Part shown: positions 12,101 to 13,938 of the stretch, in pieces
How positions within the stretch are numbered: position 1 is the first letter of the stretch
How the letters are laid out: every line of letters begins with the position of its first letter
Source: Zootoca vivipara
Taxonomy: Eukaryota
Assembly (NCBI RefSeq): GCF_963506605.1
Contig: NC_083277.1
Coordinates: 73,842,001 to 73,906,000 of the forward strand
Length of the DNA stretch: 64,000 nucleotides
Reading direction: 5' to 3'
The notes under the pieces: model-generated
What the model was told of the DNA's origin: nothing
The model's input: the letters and a program-made list of their open reading frames with translations, nothing else
Databases searched by the model: none
Program-made: the position numbers and the translations under genes

Positions 12101-13130
12101 ATTCATTGGAACATGCACAGCGCACACATTTTGCACAGTGTCAAAAGACTGTGCAGTGTAATAAGTTTTTGTGCACATGGGATATAAAAAGGAGTTAGGT
12201 AGTTCCTTAAAAAGAACAAGAAATACATGAGGAAAGATCAAAATAAATAGAAAATGAAGATGAATACTGGTTCCTTTCAAATACTCATAACACAGATTAA
12301 TAGTATATTATTGGACTACTTGACTAGTCAAAGGCATTTATTGACTCATATTGAACTCCATTTAAATAGTTTGTGTAGGTATGCAGCCATTACACACCAC
12401 TATAAAACAAATAAAATATTGCACAGATGTGCCATAGTCCTCTCACAGTATGCTGATCATGTTAAAATTTCCTTTGTTTTGAGGTTGGAGGGGATTTGTG
12501 GGGAAAGAGAGTCTCAGTACCCCACTATAGGTCAAGGAAGAAAGATAATTTAGTCCTCCAAATAATTGGGGGCACCCCCTAGTCCTCCTTTATTCCCCCA
12601 AGCCACCTCTTTCTTCTTGTTCTTTCATTTCTCCAAATGTCCTGGCTTCCCCCCTTTCTGTTGTCTCCCCCTTCCTTCCCTTTTCTTTTCCTGTTAAATC
12701 TTATTTTCTTTCCCCTCTTTTATCTGGCCATGCCACAGCTAGGAAATTGACACCAATAGCTATTCTACAGTTGTTCTCTTTCATGTTCTCTTTCCCCAGT
12801 AGGTGGATCAGGTGTTCTTGATTATCCAGTAAAGTTCTCCTTGAAGGACAACATAAGCTATATCTCAAACTGTATGCTCCTGTTCACTCTACTTGTTTCC
12901 ATACGATACAGGGTTTTGATTGACCAACCAGTACTGCATCCAGGTCCAACCTAATGCCTGTCTATATGAACCTTGAGGATAGCTTCATTGATTCTGCAGA
13001 ATGCCAAGTAGGTTGCAATCTATGGAGCATAATATTAAAAACAAGATAGGTAGCTGTGTTGTTCTGAGTCAAAGCAAAATAAAAAAATTCCTTCAGTAGC
13101 ACCTTAAAGACCAACTAAGTTTTTATTTTG

Positions 13131-13168
13131 GTATGAGCTTTCGTGTGCATGCACATTTCTTCAGATAC
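13131..13168 (-). ncRNA. Minimal type I hammerhead ribozyme motif (PLE-associated)
   Basis: Minus strand GTAT-CTGAAGA-A-ATGTG-CATG-CACAC-GAAA-GCTC-ATAC: CUGANGA and GAAA cores, stem I GUAU/AUAC, stem II with one A-C mismatch, palindromic AGCU in place of stem III. Confidence 0.72.
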
Positions 13169-13347
13169 ACTTGAAACAGAAGAGTCAGACCCGTATGTAT
13201 ATACAGAGGGTGGGTGGTGGGTGGGAATGGGTGATGGGCTGATGGGAGTGGTAAACCTGTAGGTGGCTGTTAATGACTGTTGATGACTGCAATTGGTCCT
13301 GCGGGGGAAAAGCAATGGCTGAGGCGAGGCGCTAAAGAAAGCTTGAT

Positions 13348-13703
13348 CATGCATAATGAGATAAGAATCCAATGTCTCCATGGTTTTAAGCTCCATGGTT
13401 TTAAGCTTGGTAATGAGTTCCAATTCAGAAACTTCTCTTTCCAGTCTGTTCCTGAATTTTTTTCTGTAATAAAACAGCTGCTTTGAGATCTTGTATAGAA
13501 TGTCCTGGGAGATTGAAGTGTTCTCCTACTGGTTTCTCTGTCTTGTGGTTCCTGATGTCAGATTTATGTCCATTTATCCTTTGGCGTAGGGTTTGGCCTG
13601 TTTGTCCAATATAGAGAGCTGAAGGGCACTGTTGGCATTTGATGGCATACACAATGTTAGAAGATGAGCAATTAAATAGTCCTGAGATGGTATGTTGGAT
13701 GTT
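13348..13703 (-). pseudogene. PLE GIY-YIG endonuclease C-terminal fragment (frameshifted)
   Basis: HTISGLFNCSSSNIVYAIKCQQCPSALYIGQTGQTLRQRINGHKSDIRNHKTEKPVGEHFNLPGHS has VYxIxCxxC..YIGQT..R..H..HF..H. After a frameshift in an A-run it continues FRNRLEREVSELELITKLKTME and then DIGFLSHYA*. No RT domain present. Confidence 0.9.
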
Positions 13704-13838
13704 GTAGTCATCAATTGCAGTCACCAACAGTCGTTAACAGCCATCTACAGGTTTACCACTCCCATCAGCCCATCACCCATTCCCACCCCCACCCCCCACC
13801 CTCTGTATATACATAAGGGTCTGACTTCTGTTTCAAGT

Positions 13839-13876
13839 GTATCTGAAGAAGTGTGTATGCACACGAAAGCTCATAC
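13839..13876 (+). ncRNA. Minimal type I hammerhead ribozyme motif (PLE-associated)
   Basis: GTAT-CTGAAGA-A-GTGTG-TATG-CACAC-GAAA-GCTC-ATAC: intact cores, perfect 5-bp stem II, 4-bp stem I, predicted cleavage after C13872. Confidence 0.8.
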
Positions 13877-13938
13877 CAAAATAAAAACTTAGTTGGTCTT
13901 TAAGGTGCTACTGAAGGATTTTTTTAATTAAAAACAAG

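Follow-up and report, generated by a model that had tools for sequence, protein, structure and literature searches.

A segment of the 64-kb window, which is the whole stretch of lizard-type genomic DNA analysed here, carries a fragment of a GIY-YIG endonuclease bracketed by two inverted arms, each with a hammerhead ribozyme (HHR) motif and the two motifs lying on opposite strands. This arrangement raises the question of whether the composite is a new RNA switch, a unit of a recurrent mobile family, or the footprint of a transposition event of an already known kind. The initial annotation identified it as a fragment of a Penelope-like element (PLE) with an inverted partial pseudo-LTR (pLTR) and minimal hammerheads with a palindromic helix III, and this identity is right, being borne out by Pfam, by the arms and by the motifs. 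The locus is very probably a single, old, dead, 5'-truncated PLE insertion on the minus strand, and the inverted arms with their opposite-strand hammerheads are a known PLE insertion footprint and not a new RNA switch, which makes the whole a composite of an already known kind.

Architecture and boundaries of the insertion

The central part of the composite (13296-13705, minus strand) is a C-terminal GIY-YIG endonuclease (EN) remnant of a PLE open reading frame (ORF). Its match to the Pfam family PF01541 scores 27.4 bits, where the cut-off is 22.6 (E=4.1e-6), and upholds the earlier description of a GIY-YIG fragment lying between the arms without a reverse transcriptase (RT). The residues VYAIKCQQC...YIGQT...NGHKSD...EHF represent a GIY-YIG core with Cx2C and downstream His residues, as found in PLE-type EN. 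The remnant is in frame over 13705-13425, a part that reads ...NIVYAIKCQQCPSALYIGQTGQTLRQRINGHKSD..., and the GIY-YIG frame breaks near a T-run at 13457-13463, after which another frame carries RLEREVSELELITKL...; a 15-bp tandem duplication occupies 13378-13407, and stops appear in the original frame past this duplication. Upstream of EN no RT is found, about 400 nt of EN sequence being all that lies between the arms and the ORF being cut at 13705, so that the copy is a 5'-truncated non-autonomous fragment and not a complete PLE. Throughout the 64-kb window there is no ORF of at least 130 aa with recognisable content. Eight short GIY-YIG proteins retrieved by a word-based protein search match the remnant with 55-77% local BLASTP identity, and a PDB sequence search with the EN fragment gives no match at E<=1. 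The named protein matches belong to one agamid lizard, two turtles and one entry labelled Listeria, which is probably mislabelled.

The left arm (13078-13295, minus strand) follows straight on from the end of the EN frame and constitutes the 3' untranslated/pseudo-LTR portion of this 5'-truncated copy; it is in sense with the GIY-YIG remnant and shows inverted homology to 13712-13929. The right arm (13712-13926, plus strand) repeats this 3' region as a second, inverted and 5'-truncated copy without a tail. The truncated ORF is separated from the inverted arm by an inner junction of 6 bp (13706-13711), arm homology beginning at 13712 according to blastn. Read along the minus strand, the order of parts is the inverted 3' region (13926-13712), the six bases (13711-13706), the EN remnant, the region 13295-13078 with the sense hammerhead, and a 31-bp extension (13077-13047). 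Inverted repeats of about 215 bp with about 95% identity had been estimated by eye, and the alignments agree with this estimate: a blastn comparison of the region with the whole window pairs 13078-13295 with 13712-13926/9 at 94.1% over 220 columns (E=3e-93), and a repeat search returns the segment pairs 13078-13182/13825-13929 at 96% and 13198-13295/13712-13809 at 89%. In a global arm-to-arm alignment, 9 substitutions are distributed over 216 aligned bases (p=4.2%, K2P 4.3%), consisting of 5 transitions and 4 transversions, together with two 2-bp indels. Besides the self-match and the inverted match, blastn detects no further copy in the 64-kb window; direct repeats of at least 20 nt are likewise absent except for a chance 20-mer inside the arms, so that neither direct pLTRs nor a partial tandem arrangement is present. 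The inverted form is the only pLTR arrangement at the locus, and the literature lists it as an alternative to the direct form.

The outer limits define a single 880-bp insertion at 13047-13926. A 13-bp target-site duplication (TSD), ATTAAAAACAAGA, brackets the whole composite, with its left copy at 13034-13046 and an identical 13-mer at 13927-13939, and no internal TSD occurs. The unit had first been delimited as 13044-13925; these bounds are now refined by one to three bases and supplemented with the TSD and with a 31-bp tail at the left end only. This tail (13047-13077, minus strand) is the 3'-most extension of the minus-strand element and lies between the TSD and the inverted homology. Its minus-strand reading ends in the AC-rich stretch AACAACACAGC, the tailed end being located 88 nt downstream of the predicted HHR cut, and 1,625 RNA reads from other copies extend past 13047. 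The target is AT-rich and contains ATT.

Public sequencing runs (DNA and RNA, from organisms A and B) were compared with 12600-14400. Contigs of organism A that match the window exactly span both outer junctions, covering 12600-13086 and 13901-14167. In organism B, a related species, a 445-nt DNA contig at single-copy depth (11.4) joins 12864-13033 (positions 1-170 of the record) directly to 13927-14167 (positions 171-411), with 893 bp missing and a single copy of the 13-mer, and thus represents the empty site. Because these contigs are built from overlapping 31-letter words, as the method is understood, a 13-bp repeat cannot fake the join of 13033 to 13927. The locus therefore combines a TSD, an AT-rich target and a site that is empty elsewhere, as expected for a PLE insertion. 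The flanks of organisms A and B differ at 29 of 818 positions (3.5%), a value close to the arm divergence of 4.2%, which fits arms that arose in a single event at about the time of the species split or later. The fit is not a clean one, as the arm divergence is nominally above that of the flanks though the site is empty in organism B; with 9 substitutions, sampling error covers the excess, and RT errors may add to it.

Hammerhead motifs of the two arms

The right-arm motif (13839-13876, plus strand) reads GUAU-CUGAAGA-A-GUGUG-UAUG-CACAC-GAAA-GC-U-C-AUAC and contains a minimal hammerhead at 13843-13872, with C3 at 13843, C17 at 13872 and predicted cleavage after C13872, that is intact by a structural descriptor. 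It features both catalytic boxes, an unpaired A between A9 and 10.1, the G10.1-C11.1 pair and C17, as well as a 5-bp helix II, a 4-bp helix I and a palindromic AGCU, with no helix III hairpin. In sequence, the motif agrees with every published criterion for minimal hammerheads, and the emergent hallmarks of PLE minimal hammerheads listed by Cervera and de la Pena include its features (PMC4209133). The descriptor, which embodies the published constraints on minimal hammerheads, has one match in the window, namely the right arm, and none in 100 first-order Markov-simulated 64-kb sequences, which indicates that the right-arm motif is not a chance occurrence. As an isolated 50-mer, it is predicted by RNAfold to adopt a hammerhead-like fold of about -8 kcal/mol.

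The left-arm motif (13164-13135, minus strand) has C3 at 13164 and C17 at 13135. The boxes CUGANGA and GAAA, with H17 after U16.1, are present in both arms, as is the AGCU, and the unpaired A is kept in the left motif; however, A replaces G at 10.1 and stands opposite C11.1, whereby the G10.1-C11.1 pair is lost and the motif fails the descriptor. Being located downstream of the EN remnant on the same strand, it gives the pLTR/3' region a hammerhead in sense with the ORF. The observation of a hammerhead motif in each arm, one per strand, is confirmed; the right motif is intact, whereas the left one lacks the G10.1-C11.1 pair. At 13156 in the left motif, nearly all family DNA and RNA reads carry another letter, and at 13856 in loop 2 of the right motif nearly all family reads show T>C, so each arm has gained one private change within its motif. 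With the majority family letter at 13856, helix II and its loop would form a perfect 14-nt palindrome.

A check with the Rfam hammerhead model, suggested in the initial annotation, gives no match: the Rfam covariance models report no hammerhead at gathering score in the whole window or at E<=10 in 12900-14100. Such a result is expected, because the Rfam models need the helix III hairpin that is missing here. Weak snoRNA-like Rfam matches with E values of 4-8 were set aside as chance. An exact-pattern hammerhead scan yields 0 matches in metagenome and viral contig collections, where reptile DNA is not expected.

Abundance, transcription and folding

The repeat family to which the element belongs is very abundant in both species. 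In organism A, the unique flanks have a summed contig word depth of about 30, the interval 13027-13941 one of 1e5-2.5e6; in organism B, depth on the element rises to 4.6e5, and the peak falls on the parts from the hammerhead to the tail. At 13705, 21 family DNA contigs leave the copy and continue into ORF sequence (...HPDNTITGPN, then NIQHTISG). The contig sequence reading past 13705 resembles that of lizard relatives (...NTITGPS...), whereas the copy here turns into the arm instead; the inner junction is thus not the family norm. Depth also drops 3- to 14-fold in the bins at or just inside the junction (13698-13819). Many apparent 'skip' joints from about 13150 to about 13840 are seen in DNA contigs and were attributed to misalignment at the near-palindromic helix II, their sides being only 18-30 nt long.

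Transcription was assessed in raw reads from two RNA runs of organism A, with about 1.1 Gb read from each. Across both runs, RNA reads on the unique flanks are 0 in every bin except one at 1.08, so the proposed RNA-seq check for transcription of the locus finds essentially no reads there. Thousands of RNA reads fall on the element, 85-90% of which run on into unlike sequence, and these reads carry family-wide differences such as T>G at 13062 (588 of 588). Both features indicate that the element RNA reads stem from other copies. The repeat family itself is expressed. Among the family-wide reads of the two runs, read starts and ends do not accumulate at 13872/13873 or at 13135/13134. An excess of T>C and A>G in RNA reads was considered as editing and rejected, given that the same differences occur in DNA contigs and that the reads come from other copies.

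As had been anticipated, a full-length transcript of either strand is predicted to fold into a stem of about 215 bp containing one sense ribozyme (MFE -442 kcal/mol, z = -30, versus about -8 kcal/mol for the ribozyme fold). In both directions of transcription, it is the downstream arm that holds the sense hammerhead, which follows its complement at a distance of 679 nt. With a single sense motif per transcript there is no same-strand partner, and the intramolecular dimer needed by minimal hammerheads is therefore impossible; on this folding model, the arrangement is predicted to be the least favourable geometry for cleavage. Monomeric minimal hammerheads show no detectable cleavage in vitro and dimers cleave weakly (PMC4209133). 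In PAc, the Poseidon element of Anolis carolinensis that serves as an in vitro retrotransposition system, the HHR needs its protein, and RNA-seq ends at its cut site are absent (PMC11167929).

Origin of the composite and comparison with known systems

One proposal in the initial annotation was that the arm-EN fragment-arm unit may recur genome-wide as a non-autonomous, ribozyme-bearing fold-back family; such a family would be mobilised in trans by PLEs. The component sequences are indeed extremely abundant in two species, and PLE-derived non-autonomous elements exist in the form of retrozymes (10.64898/2026.07.22.740005). Nevertheless, this proposal is highly unlikely, as no second copy of the unit occurs in 64 kb, the 21 DNA contigs go into the ORF and not into the arm at 13705, and depth falls 3- to 14-fold at 13698-13819; in addition, a hairpin would serve poorly as a template, and an insertion by-product fully accounts for the structure. 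The single TSD, the empty orthologous site and the 21 contigs that bypass the inner junction instead favour a one-off, 5'-inverted PLE. The probability is equally small that the composite is a propagating hairpin-forming PLE derivative, or that the locus is a hairpin source of small RNAs silencing the abundant, expressed parent family. Two independent PLE insertions of opposite orientation, one nested in the other or both at a single site or at neighbouring ones, could in principle cluster in this way, given a very abundant family and a preference for AT-rich targets, but one 13-bp TSD surrounds the whole composite with none within it, and in the related species all 893 bp are missing as one block. 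Both arms, moreover, represent one and the same 3' region, with about equal divergence between them, and the right arm adjoins the truncated ORF at a distance of only 6 bases, all of which makes a double insertion extremely improbable.

An alternative of another kind is that the fold-back has been co-opted at the locus, with strand-independent self-cleavage or termination competing against dsRNA, or as a hairpin source of small RNAs or a target of editing. The predicted stem of about 215 bp from either strand and the intact catalytic core of the right-arm motif would suit such a role. Against it stand the essentially empty unique flanks in the two RNA runs, the derivation of the element reads from other copies, the lack of a read-end pile at either predicted cleavage site, the inactivity of monomeric minimal hammerheads in vitro and the dependence of the PAc HHR on protein. 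Each transcript, furthermore, would contain one sense HHR that is always made after its complement, the left HHR is without G10.1-C11.1, and the site is empty in the related species, which means that the unit is not conserved. Co-option is thus exceedingly doubtful, the strand-independent switch or terminator put forward earlier finds no support in the flank reads, the cleavage sites, the position of the single sense HHR behind its complement or the defective left helix II, and nothing points to any function at the locus.

For the single PLE insertion, a mechanism can be drawn from published PLE biochemistry, obtained in vitro with a Poseidon-clade element of another lizard. The GIY-YIG endonuclease would cut the two strands of an AT-rich, ATT-containing target with a stagger of 13 bp, and both DNA ends would prime reverse transcription on the 3' part of a PLE RNA. 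One cDNA, begun at a distal internal start site and thereby including the 31-bp tail, would copy the hammerhead and the 3' UTR and then about 400 nt of EN coding sequence before stopping; the other, begun at a proximal start site and hence without a tail, would stop after about 215 nt. Joining of the two cDNAs head to head, with 6 bases between them, would yield the order TSD, tail, 3' region, EN fragment, inverted 3' region, TSD. Every element of this kind has a pLTR ribozyme; both hammerheads would then be copies of it, and would necessarily be one per strand. The copy has since decayed: it shows the frameshift, the 15-bp duplication and the stops, substitutions separate the arms at 4% of positions, and G10.1 is lost from the left motif. 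We infer from the footprint, which is itself directly observed, that the two cDNAs would have been primed from the two target strands.

The 5' inversion of L1 by twin priming is another case in which a single event gives two convergent cDNAs, an internal inversion junction and one TSD. There, the inverted segment derives from sequence lying further 5' in the same RNA, and no inverted repeat results. In the composite, by contrast, a common 3' region is the starting point of both cDNAs, which would leave true inverted arms.

Typical PLEs exhibit a high rate of 5' truncation, an adjacent inverted 5'-truncated copy that creates inverted repeats, and a 30-40-bp tail that is often found at one end only (Craig et al. 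2021, PMC8557442). The canonical layout of EN+ PLE insertions goes back to Evgen'ev and Arkhipova 2005 and Arkhipova 2006, as summarised in PMC8557442. With EN+ PLEs (Penelope/Poseidon, Neptune), the copy shares the C-terminal GIY-YIG remnant, the heavy 5' truncation, the adjacent inverted 5'-truncated copy, the tail at one end (31 bp here, 30-40 bp as published; PMC8557442, PMC11167929), the pLTR hammerhead in sense with the ORF, and the AT-rich target with a TSD. It differs from them in being decayed and in having neither an RT, a direct pLTR nor a tandem partial copy; of a full EN+ PLE, it represents only the last ~660 bp together with a 215-bp inverted copy. In relatives, a Cx4Cx2C linker upstream of EN hints that the family may belong to Neptune, while the RT-less copy itself gives no clade.

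The PAc element offers a biochemical parallel. Its protein cleaves and extends both target strands and prefers ATT in AT-rich DNA; reverse transcription starts internally, in an AC-rich stem-loop, and the PLE tail is the sequence between two observed RT start sites (PMC11167929). The AT-rich ATT target is common to both elements, as is an element end in an AC-rich stretch, which lies 88 nt past the HHR cut here and 85-92 nt past it in PAc (a distance computed from published positions). Two alternative ends about 31 bp apart, which constitute the tail, are also shared, and priming by PAc from both DNA strands would, by analogy, explain the inverted arms. PAc belongs to another family, and its ORF starts in HHR stem II, whereas the ATG in loop 2 of the present copy opens a frame of only 11 codons. 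With its one TSD, its empty orthologous site, its two cDNA starts 31 bp apart and its convergent cDNAs, the locus provides a clean in vivo example of a PLE insertion, and this footprint agrees with the 2024 in vitro model of PAc.

Minimal hammerheads of metazoan PLEs (Cervera and de la Pena 2014, PMC4209133) share with the present motifs the boxes CUGANGA and GAAA, an unpaired nucleotide between A9 and 10.1, the G10.1-C11.1 pair (right arm), a 4-bp helix I, no helix III hairpin, the palindromic A-GC-U, C17, and dual motifs on opposite strands. Such dual motifs, 100-700 bp apart, were reported as early as 2014 (PMC4209133). Differences consist in helix II, which has 5 bp here and 6-8 bp in the described examples, and in the left A10.1. 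The locus carries little weight as a discovery and is useful as an insertion example and as an annotation aid: in PLE-rich reptile genomes, opposite-strand hammerhead pairs a few hundred bp apart are to be annotated as insertion by-products and not as regulatory devices.

Non-LTR retrozymes and tandem HHR repeats (Cervera and de la Pena 2020; 10.64898/2026.07.22.740005) resemble the composite in being derived from PLE pLTRs, ORF-less and hammerhead-bearing. Direct tandem repeats, each with a same-strand HHR, are not found in the composite, which has opposite-strand motifs and no tandem repeat. Retrozymes are organised as direct tandem repeats whose same-strand HHRs are able to dimerise and to release circular RNA, whereas the two hammerheads of the present locus lie on opposite strands.

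Probable short hammerhead-to-tail copies and a predicted helix II palindrome

The part of the Penelope-like element that runs from the hammerhead ribozyme to the tail (13027-13209 and 13820-13941) is two to three times commoner among the family's DNA contigs than the part derived from the GIY-YIG endonuclease (13296-13705, minus strand), and it also receives most of the RNA reads. RNA loose ends are also clustered at 13162-13170, right where the left-arm hammerhead has its 5' edge. Taken together, these observations suggest that the genome holds many short hammerhead-to-tail copies of approximately 120 bp outside the element at 13047-13926.

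Within the hammerhead, helix II and loop 2 (13851-13864 in the right arm; 13143-13156 on the minus strand in the left arm) would form a perfect 14-nt palindrome if 13856 carried the majority family letter (C). When two copies were folded together with RNAcofold, pairing of helix II between the two molecules (-28.6 kcal/mol) was favoured over two separate hairpins. Such a duplex would represent an alternative dimer that competes with the catalytic fold.

Low-complexity stretches and the inner junction

Each arm contains a G/C-rich low-complexity stretch of the GGGTGG type, at 13198-13240 in the left arm and 13759-13819 in the right. Of all bins on the element, the right-arm one at 13759-13819 shows the lowest family depth, so this stretch seems to change faster than the rest of the tail. 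One of the two arm-to-arm indels, CC at 13786-13787, also falls within it.

At the inner junction, AGTCATCAA (13706-13722) comprises six unassigned bases followed by the first bases of the right arm. A 9-mer from this junction recurs on the minus strand of the left arm at about 13288-13280, a few bases from the inner end, and its right-arm counterpart carries C in place of T (substitution at 13724). The junction 9-mer may be a trace of microhomology or template slippage where cDNAs were joined.

Closest short relative and flanking microsatellite

The closest short relative (P0001; 60% identity, PF01541) is encoded on a 345-bp contig, and its NCBI label assigns it to Listeria monocytogenes as a partial GIY-YIG nuclease. 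It is most likely a Penelope-like element of a reptile or other vertebrate that contaminates a bacterial assembly.

About 240 bp to the right of the insertion lies a microsatellite (14177-14212) that starts as (GTT)n and decays into ATT repeats; around it, RNA and DNA reads are flagged as cut (14168-14220).
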